A stretch of DNA of 64,000 bases, taken from Lepidodermella squamata (taxonomy: Eukaryota > Animalia > Gastrotricha). Under the pieces are notes generated by a model. That model was not told where the DNA came from and made no database searches. It saw nothing but the letters and a program-made list of their open reading frames with translations. The stretch lies in contig JBLDXI010000042.1 in NCBI GenBank assembly GCA_047495785.1, forward strand, positions 3,720,001 through 3,784,000, given 5' to 3'. Positions 10,708 through 20,004 of this stretch are shown here, piece by piece (position 1 is the first letter of the stretch; each line of letters starts with the position of its first letter). The position numbers and the translations under genes were made by a program.

Positions 10708-13700
10708 ATGTCTACTGAATCAGCTGAGCTAAGTATAAAGCCAGGAGATGTTTTTCCGTCCCGAGATTACATCGTGGACAATTGGTTACCCCGGTTTCGG
10801 GACCAAACTTTGGAGCCGTTCATCAGCCGTGGCACTGACAAGTCTGTTCTGCGTCTCATTTGTACTCATGGCTATAAACGCAAGGCGCAAATCACCAATG
10901 GCGAGCGTCCGAATCAAAATTTGGCTTACTTGGCTTGTCCGGCAAAAATCACCGGCACTGCGACGAAGGACGGGCATATGAAAATCAACCAAGTCGTGCG
11001 CTGCCATAGCCACGACATCTCGGAGGAGCGGTACGCCACCTACTGTTTCAACCGAAAACTCGACGAGGCGAAGAAGGCTGAGATCCTGTCCCATTTGAAG
11101 AACAACGCGAAAGCGTTGACAATCGCCCATCATGTGAGCAATGAAACCAACAAGCTCATCACCGCCAAGCAAATTCACAATTTAGCCCAGGTAAATGAGC
11201 CTAATGCCTCTCCGAATTTCGCTAATTACGCCGTTTTGTTACAGAAACACCGCATCAGCCCTGACGAAAGCAGACGTGTTCTGGACGAGACACTGGCAGC
11301 TGTGCAGGAGGGCGACGGCATCGTGCGCACCACCCGTGACGCGAACGGTAACGTCGACGTGCTCTTCATTGCGACACCGTCGATGATTAACGACATGAAC
11401 AAGCTCAAGCCGAACACCATCTTACTTGATACGACTTTTAAGACGAATGTCGAAAAGTAAAAGCTGTGTACGTTTGTTTACGTCTGTCCTCTCACTGGCG
11501 GCACTCGAGTCGCAGGCGTGTCTCTCCTAGCTGACGAATGCTCGCAAAATGTCAAGTCCATGCTGCAAGAGTTCAACAATTTGTATGGCGCTGGGCCGTG
11601 GTTTTTTATCGTTGACAAAGACTTTGATCAAATTGACATACTCCGCGAAATTTTTCCGGACTGTATCATTTTGCTGTGCATTTTCCACGCCTTGAAGTAT
11701 ATGAGAAACGTCATCGCTACGATTCGAAACAATGAAGTCAACGACCTGCAGCAATTCAAGTGCGAAGTGTTCGACGGTTTCAAGGCGATGGTCGGTTCTA
11801 AGCGCGAGGAGTTTTTTGAAACGGCCGTCGGCAGTTGGCGTGCGCTGGTTCAACCGCACGTCACCGTGAAAATCGTGCGCACGGCTGAGCAGCCGCTGGC
11901 CGATTACTTCGAGCGCAACTGGCTTAATTGCGTCGAAATGTGGGCCCTTTTCGCCCGCCGCACGCCGCAGTTACCCGATCATGCTCACTAACACGACTGG
12001 GCGCGTTGAACGATTTTTCGGCTCGTTGAAGGAAGAAATGTGCGCCGGTTTCTCAACCAAGCCACCGATGCCAGTTTTCATTCCGTTTCTGATTTCGTTT
12101 ATCGAGCGCCGCCGGGCCGAGAAAACCGTTGTGAAGCGCGCTGTTCGCCGAGGTGACCAGTTTGAACAATTGCTCGATAAAGCATCTTACGAAATTTCAT
12201 CGTAAGTTATTTTCAGAATTTGTAGAAAAAATTGTAAAATTTCTGTTTTTTAGCTATGCCCTGGCGGAATTTCACGGCTCATTGAAGCGATCCGTTACTC
12301 GTTCAATGGCTTTGGTTCACGGCGTTGGTGTTCGTGAAAAGTTCGAAAATGGCGATCAGGCAGACTATAATACCACGCCGAGCAAGTGCTCCTGCACGTT
12401 CTACATGAGCATGGCCTTGCCGTGTCATCACATCTTGTTCTTACGATCGAAGCACGACGAGCCGTTGTTTGACAAGATGCTGTTCCACAGCAAGTATTTC
12501 AATGATTTTATTCGCCCGGTCAACGGTGGCGAGCCAGTCAATGCTAACTTTCGTCCGGTTGAGGCCGATTTCGACGCAGAATTCGCGGCCTACAGATTCA
12601 CCGAGACAACTTTCAAGCCGAGAGCAGGGCGCAGACCGGCTGATAACGCCGGTCGTTATCGAAAAATGTCACAGCTGACCCTGGTTATTGCTGACCTCGC
12701 CTCGCAACACCCAAATCGTGTCTTCGACCGATACTATTCGCAATTGGAAAAGTTGGCTGATTTGATTCGAGCCCAGAAAAATTTCGAAATTGTTGTGAAG
12801 GTAATGACGTCTTGTTTTATTGCTTGTTTGCAAGTGGACTAAACTGAAAATTTGTTAGGACCTTCCGGTGGGTGATGAAGAAGCGACGCCTCGTCAGCCG
12901 GGCGAGCAGCAGCAGCAGCAGCAGCAGCCGGGCGAGCAGCAGCAGCAGCAGCAGCAGCCGGGCGAGCAGCAGCAGCAGCAGCCGGGCGATCAGCAGCAGC
13001 AGCAGCCGGGCGATCAGCAGCAGGCACCGGGTGACAACAACATCAACAACACGCCGACACAGTCACCGGTGGAACCCGCCGCCTTTGAGGCGCCCGCTGA
13101 CGCTCATTCGTCACTTCCGGGACCAATCACCGACGAGCTCGGCTTGCGCGAGCAGGATTACCTCGTGCTGCGCACTGACACCTACCTGGGCGACGAGCAC
13201 ATGCACGCGGCGAACAAGTTGTTCAACATGATGCGGGCCGAGGGCGTTGATGCTGCTACGCCGCTGTTGTCACAACTGCAGTTTCCGCCTACCACTGCAG
13301 AAACCGTTCAACTACATCATTGCGGGTCGGACCACTGGGTCGCCACTACGACGATAACCGTCGGCAAACTTCCGGCTGGTGTCAAACTGATGAACAGCCT
13401 GATCGGGCCGTTATCCGAATCGCTGAAAGTTCAAATCGCCCAAAGATACGCCGCGCATGCTGTTGACGGCGCCATCAGCGTCCACGTCTTGCCGGTGCCT
13501 CAGCAATCGAATGGCTTTGATTGCGGCGTTTACGCCATTGCGTATTGTGTCGAAATTTTGACGGGTAATGACCCGTCTCGAGTGGTCTTCGACCCGGCCG
13601 CCATGCGTCACCACCTCTTGCAGTGTTTCAACGATCGCCAGCTCAGCCGGTTTCCGTCCAAGCCGAAGAAAGGAAAAAGTGCAGCAATCAAAGTCGAACT

Positions 13701-13821
13701 AGTTCCTCTCCGCCCGACGACGACTGACTACTTGCCAGGTGAAGGCCTTAGTTTTAAACAAGGGAAGGACTCTGGTCGCATGAAAGGGAAGCCGCAAATG
13801 CCCTTCAACCGTAAAAAATAA
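10708..13821 (+). pseudogene. MULE transposase (DDE + SWIM) spliced to a Ulp1/C48-like protease; disabled
   Basis: LLDTTFKTN, FIVDKD, LLCIFH, NTTGRVERFFGSLK; SWIM CSC-x8-PCHH; protease HW...NSL...QQSNGFDCGVYA; introns 12202-12253 and 12801-12858; in-frame TAA at 11458 and +1 frameshift at ~11974. Confidence 0.85.
12895..13023 (+). repeat. (CAG)n-rich minisatellite encoding QPG(E/D)QQQQ repeats in the transposase-protease linker
   Basis: Five CCGGGCGA(G/T)(CAG)n units seen directly. Confidence 0.9.
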
Positions 13822-14902: not shown

Positions 14903-16673
14903 ATGAGTGTTGTGGAGCCGCAAGCGAGCGTCGTCGAGCTGACGATTTCTTGCCGAAGGCTCTTGGACATGGACCTGTTCTCGAAATCCGACCCTATGTG
15001 CGTCGTCTTCCTCAAAAACCCAGTTCGAAAGACCTGGGCCGAAATCGGCCGCACTGAAACAGTTTGGGACAACCTCAATCCAGAATTCTCTCGAAAAATA
15101 ATCGTGCCTTTCGCATTCGAGGAATACCAAATGCTGCGTTTCGAGTTGTATGACATCGATGCGGAAGATACGGATCTGTCGAAACACGACTTTCTCGGCA
15201 GTCTCGATGTTTCACTAAGCGAAATAGTCGCATCAAATGGCTTGAAAGCGTTCGAACGGCCTTTAGAGGGCAAGAAAGGTAAGGGCAAGCATGGCACTAT
15301 CCGAATCGTAGCCGAGGAAGTTTCCAGCTGCCGCGACGAGTTTTGCCTACAACTCGGGGCAAAAGATCTACCGCTTAGTTACTTCGGCCTTGGAAATCTG
15401 ATGGGCTGGAGTTCGTATTTCTACGAAATTCACAAAACGACCGAATCAACCGGCTACTCCCTAATCTATCGAAGCGAGACTGTGAAGGCTTATCGGGCAG
15501 TTTCTTGGAAGCAAGTCACTCTCAACAGCTATACTCTGTGCAACGGCGATTTAGATCGGAGTTTGAAAATCACCCTCAAGCGATATCGATCAAATGGTTC
15601 GCACAAGAAAATCGGCGAATGCAACACTACAATCCGAAGTTTGATGGATTTGACGAGCGATCACTCAATGCCTTGCCAGCTCCGCTTGACATCCAACAAA
15701 ACAACCACCTTCACGCTCATTTCATTCAGCAAGGGGTCACACTCGACTTTTCTCGACTTCATTCGGATAGGGTAATTAGATTTCATGTCTTAGACTTCAA
15801 AATCGAATTGTTTCCTATTTTAGGGGTGTGGATATGCATTGTTTCGTTGCGATCGATTTTACGTCATCTAACGGAGCTCCGACTCATCCTAATTCGCTCC
15901 ACTACATGAATCCTAGAGAGCCGAATCAATATCAAACTGCTTTACGATCTGTGCTTGAAATCATTCAAGATTACGATTCTGACAAGCAGTTCCCAGTTCT
16001 CGGATTTGGAGCCCTAATCCCGCCAAGTTGGCAAGTCAGCCATCAGTTTTTCGTGAATATGAGCCCGACCAATCCTTACTGCTATGGTGTTGAGGGAGTA
16101 ATGGAAGCCTACGCCAGAGCCTTGCCCGTCGTTCGTCTTCATGGCCCGACCAACTTCGCGCCGATCATCAGTCACGTCGCAAGGTTCGCCACCACCCATC
16201 GCGACGGCACTCACTATTTCGTTCTGCTCATAATCACCGATGGCCTCATTTCGGACATGCCTCAAACTACAGACGCTATTGTTGCGGCGAGTGGTCTACC
16301 TATTTCGATTATCATTGTCGGGGTCGGCTCAGCTGATTTCTCGGCAATGGACGTTCTCGATGCAGACGATGAGCCACTTATCGATTCTCAGGGTAGGAAA
16401 ATGCAACGTGATATCGTTCAGTTTGTGCCTTTCAACGAAATCTTGCGGCGAGCTAACAACAGTATGACCCTCGCGAAGGTGGATCTAGCTCGAGAGGTTC
16501 TATTCGAAATTCCTGGTCAATTTCTCAGCTACATGAAGTCCATCGGCGTGACGGCGGAAATGTTAGCTGCGAGAGGTCCTTACATTCCGAGAGAAAACAG
16601 CGAATTACACGTTGCTGACATGCAAAGATCGGCTACCTTGCTTTCAAATCTGACTAGCGTGAGTCAACGATAG
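14903..16673 (+). CDS. CPNE: Copine (C2A-C2B-vWA); exons 14903-15771, 15824-16673
   Basis: LLDMDLFSKSDP, LRFELYDID, TFLDFI.GG, VAIDFTSSNG, DYDSDKQFPVLGFGA, GPTNFAPII, LLIITDG, RDIVQFVPF. Confidence 0.94.
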
Positions 16674-17020
16674 CCTGTTACTATTCTGGTTTCGAAAGCT
16701 ATCCTCCATTCTTCAAGTCTGCTGCTCTATCAATCACAGATACGTTGTGTCCCGTAATAATCTCTTGCCCTCTCTTGCCAATGTTGCATTTTTGTGCTTT
16801 TTATGCGAAATCGATGAATTATTTTTGTGGTTACCATTCACCCAGCGGAAGAATAAAACAATTTACAAGTGTTTTTATTTAATTCGGATTAAGTTAACTG
16901 ATTTAAGAGAGCATCCGAAATCCGAAGTCTTGGATCGCTTGAGAGCCAGTTAGGCAGCAAGAAGCTTGAAGCTTGTGCAACTTATTCAAGCATATCCATA
17001 AGACAGTAATCTTGAGCTTA

Positions 17021-18572
17021 TCATTCTAGCTTTAGCTTTTTATCATTTTCGTCCATATTTTCGTCATCATCCGTGCAGAATTTCCCTCCGAGCAGTGCTA
17101 CGTTTGGAATGGGTGCAATGCGAGGTGCAGAGATTGGTCTCTCTCCAGGTCTAGCAGCGGCGTTGTAGTCGTGGGTTTCCGTATAATCCGCATAGACCAA
17201 TCGATCGCCCCTCACGTCAACCAAAACTCGACCAGCACCTCGATTATTCACATTACTTCCTTCATTCAAATCGAAAGCTAATTGCCCTCTCCGCTCTCCG
17301 GTCAGCGCATGCAGTTTTTCAGGCCCATGTAAGCCGGATTCGATAACAGCCCTGGCTTCGCTTCGCTGCTGATCTACCTGCGCCATTCTATTCGCCACCA
17401 CTTCTTTGTCCAACGAAACACCGTTCACAACTTGCTTTTGTTGCTGTTGCAGAGATGCTTTCTCTTGAGTCGCTTGCTTTATCGACACCCGAGCCCGCTC
17501 CAATTTATCAAGATTATCAGGCTTTACCTGTTCCTGCACTAGCTTCTTCGTCGGTCCTGAGTTCAGCTCCTGAAGTTTTTTGGAAATGGCTTGCTGTTTT
17601 TCATCGGTTAATTTGTTTCCTTCAACTGATTTCGACTCCTTGACGAGATTTTGATTGACCTTGTTTGTATAGGCAGTAGTGCGCACCGCTGCTCCTCTTG
17701 CACATTCTGCTGTAGTCGCGACCGTAGCAGAAGCAGCGGCTGTTAGAAGCGTTCGTTTCAAGTCAACCTAACAACAAAGTTTGTTATGCCTAACGTTAAA
17801 ACAAAGCTCTACCTTAGAAATATCGAAGTCATTTTCAACTGCTTGAATTGACACGTCCGTTAGACCAGCAGTTGTCGCCTGAGATGTAACCCTGGCTACT
17901 CCTTGAACTATACTACTCGATACGTTTTGAGTCGCTGCACTGACCGCTTGTCCTGACGCGCCGCCGACTAGGCCACAAACTGCGCCAATACCAACGGCCT
18001 TTGCGAACGAACCAGCTGAAACGTCTTCGCCTTTCACAGCTTTGGCTGTCTCGGAAACCACCCCACTGACAACTCCCGTTGAAGCTCCAGCTCCGATCTG
18101 AATGCCAACTTTAGCAGCAGTGCTAGCAGTTTTGGCCAGTACAGTGCCTCCAACACTGAGGCCACCTGAAGCTACCCCGATCACAGAACCGACGGCAACG
18201 TCCGAGGCCAAATCCTTTGCGTTCATTCTCTCGCCAGCGATTTTTTTAGAGAGTGGATTTGAAATAAAGGACGCGCCACCCCCAATCATCACGCCGCCAG
18301 CAATAATTGCAGCTACGCCACCAGTTAGAACTGTGAGAGCGACACCTCCTGTTAAAAATTGTTAAAAAGTCGAAAATGGTGATGACTCTCAGAATAATAG
18401 CATCACCTCCAACTAGACCAGCCCCGGCAACAACTGAGAGCGCGCCTTTAATAAAAGAAGCCTTAAGAGATTCTTGACATCTGCAGCTGCAAGCAGCGGG
18501 GTCTTCGCACATCTTTCGATTTACGTACTTGCCACGACATTTATTTCCGCGACAAGCAGAGCATTTCCCCAT
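17021..18572 (-). CDS. 482-aa protein: Cys-rich N-terminus, glycine-zipper hydrophobic helices, coiled coil, C-terminal RelE/HigB/YafQ-like motif; exons 18572-18407, 18348-17813, 17767-17021
   Basis: Three minus-strand ORFs join in frame through GT-AG introns (58 and 45 bp), total 1449 nt; motif LHALTGERRGQLAFDL...GRVLVD...THDY. Confidence 0.8.
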
Positions 18573-19500
18573 GTTGTAAATAAAAACAACCCTGTGGTGT
18601 GGAAAACGAAAAACGAAAATTCTTTAGAGGTTGGGGTTACCTCTGAAAAAACTCTTTAGCATAACGGAGGTCGAGAAGCAGGCCCCGAATCGAGAGCAGG
18701 GGTTTTAGTCATCTGAATCAACGGTCATTGGATGAATAAAAAGGAGAAGATCTCCATGTGCGATTGAGAATTAATTAAGAAAAAAATCAAAGATTTAAAG
18801 ACCCAAGAGTGCAAAAATGTCTGCAAAAATATATATAAAAAAACATATGGAAGGACATGGGGTTGGAAAGGAGGAACTTGGTAATTTTTTTCGAAGTGAA
18901 GAAGTGAAGTGCTAAAGGAAAAAAGAAAGGGTGTAGGTACATTTTCCTATCATCATTTTTGGGACTTTCACCAACCGGAAACCGGAAAATTCTAATTTCA
19001 CCAAAATTTCACCATCAAATTAGGGCTTTCGCCAACGAAACGGAAACTGCTATCAATTTGGGTAATTTTGCCAACAAAATACGGGATCTTTTCATAGTGA
19101 ATGAATTTATTCGAGCTGGATTTGCAACAAAATGCGACACGCGACTACGTATTAAGCCACCCGGCGCCATATCCCCCAACGCCCAATATAATATTATTTA
19201 GTTTAAAAAATAAAAAAAACCCATAGGTTCCCCTGTCTTCATTTTTTAGTTTCTGCTCAAAAATAGTAGAGGTGGCCCTTTATCTAACGATACCAGGTTA
19301 ACGATTCCCTCCCAGATAATTTTAAAAAATTAACCTAAAAGGGCCATAAATGCTCATTTTTGGCAAGAATGACTGCCATTCTTCTGCCGAGGTTAACTCG
19401 TCCGGAACAGTTTCTACATTTTAGAAAAATTATAATAGTTTATCCACGTTGAGAATTTTCTCTATCTGGCGATATATACAGTTTGTCTGATATATATTTA

Positions 19501-19796
19501 ATTTCGCTTTTCCGATTTTTTCGGACGTGCAACTTGGACTTCGAATTCTCTCGCCGCGTTGCTTCATTCAGAGATATCCTAGCAAACAGGTCGATTTCAT
19601 CTACTCGCAGAAAATTAATTTTTCATTGTGAAATTCCATTTTATAAAACAAAATGAAATGGAATTTTATTATTGAAAATTAATTTTCTGCGAGCAGATGA
19701 AATCGACCCGTTTGCTAGGATATCTCTGAATGAAGCAACGCGGCGAGAGAATTCGAAGTCCAAGTTGCACGTCCGAAAAAATCGGAAAAGCGAAAT
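19501..19796. repeat. Long near-perfect inverted repeat, ~125-bp arms (MITE or fold-back)
   Basis: 19501-19625 is the reverse complement of ~19673-19796 with few mismatches; the spacer is also partly self-complementary. Confidence 0.9.
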
Positions 19797-20004
19797 ACAA
19801 TACTTGCCGCACAAATTTCACGCTATTTTCGATAAATTCTCTATCAAAAATTTGACATTTCGCCACGTTTTTTTTTACTGACTGAATCCCGTCGTTTTTC
19901 ACGCGCATTTTTTAGCGATAAAAGTCGAACCAATAATTATCATCGAACAAATCATCAAAAACAGTGTAGTAGTTGGTTAAATACGGCGCTTCAGGTTGAA
20001 AAAA

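Follow-up and report, generated by a model that had tools for sequence, protein, structure and literature searches.

The subject of this report is a gene in a 64,000-nt stretch of genomic DNA from the gastrotrich Lepidodermella squamata (contig JBLDXI010000042.1, positions 3,720,001 to 3,784,000; hereafter the window). The gene lies on the minus strand between positions 18572 and 17021 and is made up of three exons whose coding sequence of 1449 nt corresponds to 482 codons and a stop (Table 1). The predicted protein combines a basic, cysteine-rich N terminus, a hydrophobic module rich in small residues, long helices and a C-terminal core that is very probably a remote homologue of bacterial HigB-like toxins of the RelE superfamily. 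We focused on the evidence for this resemblance, on the age and distribution of the gene, and on what a domain of toxin ancestry might be doing at the end of an animal protein that carries a putative membrane anchor.

This animal gene is spliced and transcribed. Logan contigs of the sequencing run X1, which we take to be RNA, lack stretches of 45 and 58 nt, bounded by CT..AC when read on the plus strand, that correspond exactly to both predicted introns. The two introns are retained in contigs of the DNA-like run X2, in which two haplotypes are present. On one X1 contig, an untemplated run of T begins just past position 16867, a few bases beyond a minus-strand AATAAA, and resembles a poly(A) tail. 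The X1 contigs do not reach the initial 97 nt of the coding sequence (positions 18476-18572), and the 5' end of the transcript lies outside their coverage. Every part of the gene is present once in the 121-Mb assembly, making it single copy, and the neighboring genes—pyruvate kinase, a two-exon copine and a TLC-domain gene—are ordinary eukaryotic genes, which together argue that the locus is not a bacterial contaminant. The initial annotation, which had described an intron-containing animal gene, was thus accurate on this point. In the second X2 haplotype, which covers window positions 17398-18142, there are 16 nonsynonymous vs. 11 synonymous codon differences among those listed; these fall in the Gly-rich and helical parts, with none of the listed differences in the HigB-like core.

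Table 1. Coordinates of the parts of the HigB-like gene and of nearby elements within the window (aa, amino acids; ORF, open reading frame; UTR, untranslated region; HMM, hidden Markov model; pLDDT, predicted local distance difference test)
Feature	Position	Strand	Description
Exon 1	18407..18572	-	166 nt; ATG at 18572; 55 codons plus 1 base; basic, Cys-rich N terminus; hydrophobic stretch begins
Intron 1	18349..18406	-	58 nt; GT..AG; phase 1; splits a Gly codon after its first base, just before GVALT
Exon 2	17813..18348	-	536 nt; hydrophobic module rich in Gly, Ala, Val and Ser
Intron 2	17768..17812	-	45 nt; GT..AG; phase 0 (between codons)
Exon 3	17021..17767	-	747 nt; linker, long helices, HigB-like core, tail; stop at 17023-17021
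3' UTR	16867..17020	-	AATAAA at 16879-16874; transcript end near 16867
Seven-cysteine cluster	18477..18563	-	Residues 4-32; C-x2-C-x4-C-x9-C-x5-C-x-C-x-C
Uncharged stretch	18260..18446	-	About 46 aa; GALSVVAGAGLVG-G-GVALTVLTGGVAAIIAGGVMIGGGASFIS; spans the exon 1/2 junction, split by intron 1
Three weaker hydrophobic segments	17930..18214	-	Small residues, glycine-zipper type; exon-2 residues 45-74, 78-98 and 108-139; hydropathy 1.3-1.6
Antiparallel helical hairpin	17330..17521	-	Exon-3 residues 83-146; model helices 9-40 and 47-72; directly before the beta-sheet
HigB-like (RelE-superfamily) core	17165..17326	-	Four beta strands; alignments A1 and A3, hhalign, Foldseek, Atlas, family HMM
Low-confidence C-terminal tail	17024..17164	-	pLDDT <50; acidic cluster, then K-L-K-L-E (KxKxx dilysine pattern)
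Copine gene	14903-16673		C2 plus copine/vWA domain; two long ORFs; convergent with the HigB-like gene
Foldback inverted repeat	19482-19815		Arms of 163 nt, 90% complementary, 8 nt spacing
ORF unit	10708-13821	+	Run of ORFs without Pfam match, then a 317-aa ORF; between pyruvate kinase and copine

Five largely independent routes converge on HigB as the bacterial counterpart of the C-terminal core: profile-profile comparison, Foldseek, an Atlas shape search, a DNA motif scan and genome searches with an HMM of the animal family. For the motif scan, 596 Gb of bacterial and archaeal genomes were searched with a DNA pattern derived from the motif of the animal family, for which ~0.3 chance matches were expected (42 bits). 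This led to two matches, both of which are small ORFs with a HigB layout overlapping downstream antitoxin genes with HTH_3 and Peptidase_M78 domains. Relatives of these two toxins occur in 14 of 401 Clostridia genomes and grade into textbook HigB ending in DYH; the profile of this HigB-like set matches Proteus HigB structures (5.5e-8) and the HigB-like Pfam family PF05015 (2.2e-5). When the alignment of the animal family (A3) was compared with the Clostridia set using hhalign, the probability was 92.6% (P 4.5e-7). Because this set had been reached via the animal motif, the comparison was repeated with PF05015 members gathered by the Pfam model alone, giving a probability of 83.9% (P 7.8e-6, score 38.7) over 46 columns that run from the NxH motif through the terminal HDY. 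In the controls for this score, the reversed alignment reached 10.5 and 100 column shuffles had a mean of 9.3 (standard deviation 2.0, maximum 17.6). Finally, when five whole bacterial genomes were searched in six frames with the animal-family HMM, the sole match in two of them was a HigB-like gene, with weak E-values of 0.023 and 0.19 per genome.

The structural evidence points in the same direction. We used an AlphaFold2 model covering exon 3 from its residue 75 to the end (174 residues), computed from a 15-sequence alignment with a mean pLDDT of 72.7, and set aside a single-sequence model (pLDDT 43). The model consists of the two long helices listed in Table 1, strands at 78-80, 88-92, 106-112 and 115-122, and a disordered tail; for comparison, the RelE fold has two helices packed against an antiparallel sheet with four or five strands. 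In a Foldseek search against 350,542 PDB chains, Proteus HigB came first (4mct_D; E 0.087, probability 0.80, 22% identity), and RelE-superfamily proteins—HigB, YoeB, RelK, HP0892/HP0894 and YoeB/ParE toxins—occupied 22 of the top 50 rows. The Atlas shape search identified a PF05015 cluster, with a TM-score by target of 0.62 over 50 residues, as well as a Gp49/RelE cluster. VIA-align returned helical hairpins only, the long helices dominating the model, and was hence uninformative on the sheet. Since no single structural score is significant and the Pfam threshold is not reached, we refer to the core as a remote homologue of HigB-like toxins rather than as a Pfam member.

The residues conserved in this core are of the kind found in an active site. 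There are nine conserved positions in the family alignments A1 and A3, which we number as full-length positions by arithmetic (exon-3 residue + 234). His387, Leu389, Gln396, Ala398, Arg414, His433 and Tyr435 are invariant, and Asp400 and Arg410 are kept in 90% or more of the sequences. The alignments pair His387 with His54 of HigB, Arg414 with Arg73 and His433 with His92. The catalytic residues of Proteus HigB are His54, Arg73 and Asp90-Tyr91-His92. Invariance of the aligned positions among sequences that are 22-40% identical to the 482-aa protein argues for a working active site, which would make ribonuclease (RNase) activity likelier than a ParE-like, nonenzymatic role. The protein bears the motifs named in the initial annotation, LHALTGERRGQLAFDL...GRVLVDVRGDRLVYADYTETHDY, and all other features listed there (cysteine pattern, Gly-rich exon 2 and long helices) are present as well. 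Its proposal of a RelE/HigB-type tip has held up in the form of a remote HigB-like domain with catalytic-type residues, recovered by hhalign, the Foldseek ranking, Atlas and the HMM.

The gene belongs to a family that is rare, patchy and fast-evolving. A phmmer search with the last 149 residues against 1.84 billion representatives identified 11 proteins (best 6.7e-16), none from a bacterial context, and the members that can be placed are eukaryotic. XP_055340391.1, from the tardigrade Paramacrobiotus metropolitanus, is encoded by a two-intron gene flanked by animal genes on a scaffold of 1.25 Mb, while another relative adjoins a secretogranin V gene in a different animal assembly. A marine relative is found on many metagenome contigs and is intron-bearing, the "gene" upstream of it being the Gly-rich exon of the same protein. 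The 483-aa gene call P0007, which comes from a sequencing run, represents a read-through across the same three-part gene; a Cys-rich first exon lies upstream of it. Automatic gene calls mishandle this family in more than one way: on the marine contig L005 (399-1929) a single gene is split into two calls, and at L007 (247-2056) the P0007 call runs through in-frame introns and omits the Cys-rich first exon. A homologue search with profile A1 returned two already known members only, an Atlas feature search of the C terminus gave no usable match, and scanning of viral contigs and plasmids revealed no relative. A motif-pattern scan of metagenomes gave one match, to an unrelated protein, which we took as a chance match.

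All family members long enough to be judged have one architecture, in which the Gly-rich module is joined to the same C-terminal domain. Read from the N terminus, the order is a basic segment with seven cysteines, then the hydrophobic Gly/Ala/Val-rich module, the helical hairpin, the HigB-like core and lastly an acidic tail. Conservation is highest in the Gly-rich module (33-60% identity). Exon 1 is 49% identical to the N terminus of the tardigrade protein P0004, and the spacing of the seven cysteines is identical across three species (the 482-aa protein, P0004 and the first exon at L007). The position and phase of intron 1 are also common to three genomes (this gene, Paramacrobiotus and L007), in each case phase 1 in the codon before GV(A/G)LT, from which we conclude that the gene is old in animals and not a recent acquisition. 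The position of intron 2 is not shared with P0004, L005 or L007, and other introns vary between genomes. These data qualify the earlier suggestion that the RNase domain was horizontally acquired: a horizontal origin is plausible, but it would be an old one.

Several features of the rest of the protein suggest an association with membranes. The cysteines of the N-terminal cluster (C4, C7, C12, C22, C28, C30 and C32) lie in a basic context, and we consider the cluster a candidate zinc-binding or S-acylation site beside a membrane anchor. No signal-peptide character was seen in this N terminus, nor in any of the three complete N termini of the family. N-myristoylation was considered as a family feature and rejected, the MG- start not being conserved (P0004 begins with MPGS and L007 with MVKC). 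The uncharged stretch of ~46 aa that follows has a Kyte-Doolittle maximum of 2.09 over 19 aa, and its length would suffice for a two-helix membrane hairpin, a topology predicted from this stretch and from the missing signal peptide. Exon 2, which encodes 178 aa, is made up of 17% Gly, 17% Ala, 15% Val and 12% Ser, and its three weaker segments of the glycine-zipper type may also insert into membranes. Exon 3 opens with an Ala/Thr-rich linker that leads into the long helices. At the other end, the protein terminates in KKLKLE, which meets the dilysine rule (Lys at -3 plus Lys at -4 or -5). The same lysine pattern, preceded by an acidic cluster, is found in 8 of 12 distinct family C termini, with examples such as KNKKD, HKKKD, DKKND, EKKDK and SKKNK. 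The dilysine motif is the classical COPI signal for retrieval to the endoplasmic reticulum (ER), and works only on a cytosolic C terminus. These termini suggest that the predicted RNase faces the cytosol and is tethered to the ER.

The explanation that we favor, with moderate confidence, is that this is an old single-copy animal gene whose product is a membrane-anchored protein with a HigB-like endoribonuclease domain of the RelE superfamily (BECR fold), the activity being putative. The RNase domain would probably be of old bacterial origin and would have been joined to the membrane module in an ancestral animal. Lacking a signal peptide, the N terminus would stay in the cytosol; the 46-aa uncharged stretch would insert as a hairpin, returning the C-terminal half to the cytosol; and the KKxx/KxKxx terminus would hold the protein in the membrane of the ER or early secretory pathway by COPI retrieval. 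There, the HigB-like domain might cut RNA at the membrane, most likely A-site mRNA on membrane-bound ribosomes in the way HigB does, and the outcome might be a regulated, local shut-off of translation for defense, stress or cell death. RelE is cited in PMC11980606 as cleaving A-site codons on eukaryotic ribosomes too. As the initial annotation had remarked, no antitoxin-like gene adjoins the locus: no helix-turn-helix (HTH) or antitoxin-like ORF is found next to the gene, whose flanks consist of the copine, the foldback repeat and a GDPD-like ORF. Restraint would therefore come from within the chain, through an acidic tail or helical hairpin covering the basic RNA-binding face, or from location, through sequestration at the membrane. 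The rarity, patchiness and fast evolution of the family, together with the divergent second haplotype, fit a defense or conflict gene better than a housekeeping one. A bolder proposal, which we regard as rather doubtful, is that several animal lineages keep an ER-tethered HigB descendant that cuts mRNA on membrane-bound ribosomes and serves as an antitoxin-free translational kill switch, self-restrained by its acidic tail or helical hairpin and released in infection or severe stress.

A number of observations weigh against our favored explanation of a membrane-anchored, HigB-like endoribonuclease. That run X1 is RNA is a guess only. Searches of Pfam, NCBIfam, PADLOC and PDB sequences gave no useful match for any exon or family profile, even at E <=10; in particular, the 482-aa protein has no Pfam match at this level and falls short of the PF05015 threshold, no RelE-superfamily family appears among the weak Pfam matches of 12 family members, and a whole-genome PF05015 scan does not select this locus. 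None of the Foldseek matches is individually significant, the best having an E-value of 0.087 and a root-mean-square deviation of ~12 A over the whole alignment. The model is without the N-terminal beta strand of HigB, and its two helices are far longer than those of HigB. The family core ends in His-Asp-Tyr, a permutation of the Asp-Tyr-His of HigB. As for the location, 4 of 12 family termini are without the dilysine motif, and an odd number of membrane passes would place the domain in the lumen, making the motif meaningless.

The initial annotation went further and likened the gene to a bacterial polymorphic toxin, and this part of it is not supported: the architecture is fixed, the gene is single copy, and there is no signal peptide, trafficking or pretoxin domain, or immunity gene. 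In terms of individual elements, no N-terminal secretion or trafficking domain was found, the N terminus being a basic Cys-rich end without a Pfam or NCBIfam domain; the gene is followed by its 3' UTR and then by the convergent copine gene, with no immunity gene immediately downstream; and no pretoxin domain (PT-TG or DUF637) was matched in Pfam at E <=10. Alternative C-terminal cassettes were not found either, since each part has one genomic copy and Gly-rich relatives, in a search seeded with the C terminus, carry the same tip. The possibility that the Gly-rich module is itself PT-TG was rejected, as the TGxDPxTG-type motif of PT-TG members is not in exon 2 and the sequences look unrelated. 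When the profile of this module was run against 301 sampled Bacillota genomes, there was no true match; the sole match (L065) lies between ABC ATPase and L17 genes, corresponds to no listed ORF of at least 100 aa, and is attributable to chance.

A related idea is that the protein is a released, colicin-like antibacterial effector, in which the Gly-zipper module inserts into the membrane of a microbe and carries the RNase in, the producer being shielded by membrane storage or by release upon lysis only. Hydrophobic Gly-rich helices before a C-terminal nuclease do recall the design of CdiA, LXG toxins and colicins (PMC3482391), and the rare, patchy and fast-evolving family would suit such a role. 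In an Atlas feature search, moreover, language-model features of exon 2 were nearest to uncharacterized Bacillota clusters (0.93), DUF637 (0.89) and PT-TG (0.82), but the recognition value is low (1837), which makes this match only a lead, and neither a shared motif with PT-TG, nor a Pfam match, nor a true match in the 301 Bacillota genomes accompanies it. None of the three complete N termini has a signal peptide, the architecture is fixed and single copy, and the dilysine end is conserved and of a cytosolic type. A secreted antibacterial role thus fits poorly, an antibacterial function being among those put forward in the initial annotation, and we consider the colicin-like effector unlikely. 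The selfish toxin-antidote elements known from nematodes offer another model, in which the antidote would be part of the same protein or be encoded at another place. The toxin ancestry of the domain would be in keeping with it, as would the strong divergence of the X2 haplotypes, with the nonsynonymous and synonymous differences given above (16 vs. 11 among those listed). However, this is a single locus without an adjoining partner gene, and the conservation of the architecture and of one intron in distant species speaks for a long-term host function rather than a young driver, which renders this model very improbable.

Two further alternatives concern the core itself. It could have kept a RelE/ParE fold without RNase activity after domestication, acting as a binding module or as a ParE-like inhibitor of some other target. 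The superfamily does include members that are not RNases, such as the gyrase poisons of the ParE type (PMC11980606), the C-terminal catalytic triplet is rearranged (HDY vs. DYH), and the first strand of the fold is not in the model. On the other hand, the invariant positions are exactly those aligned with His54, Arg73 and His92 of HigB, plus a second Arg and a Tyr, and the nearest relatives by every method are mRNA-cleaving proteins of the HigB/YoeB types, not ParE, so that loss of the activity appears distinctly unlikely. It could also be that the core resembles HigB through convergence or by chance and that the C terminus is a lineage-specific domain of another fold, as might be argued from the failure of any curated model to detect the domain, from structural E-values that are not significant and from an alignment to HigB that spans only 35-46 columns. 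That five largely independent routes reach the HigB family, including a profile match with shuffle controls, makes this quite improbable.

Comparison with known systems highlights similarities and differences. HigB of plasmid Rts1/Proteus vulgaris (PF05015; PDB 4mct, 4px8 and 4ypb) is both the best structural and the best profile match. HigB and the animal family share the motif (N/K)-x-H-x-L-x-G-(D/E)-R-x-G-x-x-(A/S)-x-x-(L/V), an Arg-led strand and a C-terminal His/Tyr cluster. However, HigB is a free protein of ~92 aa encoded in an operon with the antitoxin HigA, whereas the animal core forms the C-terminal end of a membrane protein of 482 aa encoded by an intron-containing gene, and it differs by much longer helices, an insert of 8-12 residues before the Arg strand, the HDY end and the acidic tail. 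The closest bacterial motif is that of the Clostridia HigB-like toxins (L017 from Herbivorax, L018 from Tyzzerella and their relatives; alignment A4), which have NLHPLSGDREGQYALDL where the animal family has NLHPLTGERPGQLAFDL, a closeness that is partly by construction since they were found via the animal-motif pattern. They end in S/T-x-H-Y-E, and thus have the His-Tyr order of the animal family and not Tyr-His. Unlike the animal protein, they are small, belong to toxin-antitoxin operons and have no membrane module. The toxins at L017 (3594-3947, minus strand) and L018 (5229-5585, plus strand) end in S/T-N-H-Y-E and are accompanied by antitoxins of ~370 aa with HTH_3 and IrrE/Peptidase_M78 domains; both toxins fall below the PF05015 cut-off, and neither has an ATG, GTG or TTG at the expected N terminus.

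A RelE-superfamily domain tethered to the membrane in one polypeptide is also found in ToxM, which we compared by its description. As described, ToxM has an N-terminal toxin, a central transmembrane domain and a neighboring bacterial antitoxin, while the animal protein has the reversed order and a Gly-rich anchor. Transmembrane toxins of the BECR fold have been described only in bacteria, with the domain order opposite to that of the animal protein (PMC11980606). A RelE-type RNase at the C terminus of a long multidomain protein is what the animal protein has in common with the Tox-RelE polymorphic toxins of bacteria, but these have RHS repeats, HINT peptidases, secretion signals, Imm54 immunity genes and variable tips, none of which is present in the animal protein (PMC3482391). 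Tox-RelE is listed for bacteria only (PMC3482391), and the few eukaryotic RelE/HigB database entries are all fused toxin-antitoxin genes whose origin is doubted by the authors (PMC11980606). Our literature searches found no earlier description of an animal HigB-like family, and the combination of a HigB-like RNase domain with a membrane anchor seems to be undescribed in animals. There is precedent for domesticated bacterial effectors in animals, namely the dae amidases of ticks and mites, which are secreted cell-wall amidases. There is also a eukaryotic BECR-fold RNase that works in animal cells, EndoU/XendoU, which is of a different BECR family and has no HigB motif. Neither the dae amidases nor EndoU have the membrane module of the animal HigB-like protein.

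RelE/HigB toxins are regarded as prokaryotic, and here such a domain is found in a spliced, transcribed gene with a conserved intron, in at least two animals and in an architecture not seen in bacteria. We rate this as a known catalytic fold for which kingdom, architecture and mode of control are all new, the activity being predicted. If the domain is active, it would represent a new class of animal RNase whose chemistry is known and easily assayed, it would clearly exemplify the domestication of a toxin domain in the absence of its antitoxin, and it would offer a way to study how cells keep such an enzyme in check. The current Pfam models entirely miss this branch of the RelE superfamily. A separate observation on the Pfam model of HigB-like toxins is that, at seven places in assembly G000 (L008-L014, e.g., C63:36133-36264), a dispersed repeat ORF of 123-126 aa matches its positions 36-79 weakly and with the same score (18.7 bits, E 0.22).

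The surroundings of the gene also contain elements of other kinds (Table 1). The stop codon of the copine gene is ~190 nt from the poly(A) site of the HigB-like gene. The foldback inverted repeat, ~900 nt upstream of the start of the HigB-like gene, contains a 57-aa ORF in each arm and is similar to miniature inverted-repeat transposable or foldback elements. In the ORF unit between pyruvate kinase and copine, the 317-aa ORF combines tandem PGEQQQQQ repeats with an Ulp1-type Peptidase_C48 domain (E 4e-5), and the unit is probably transposon-derived.

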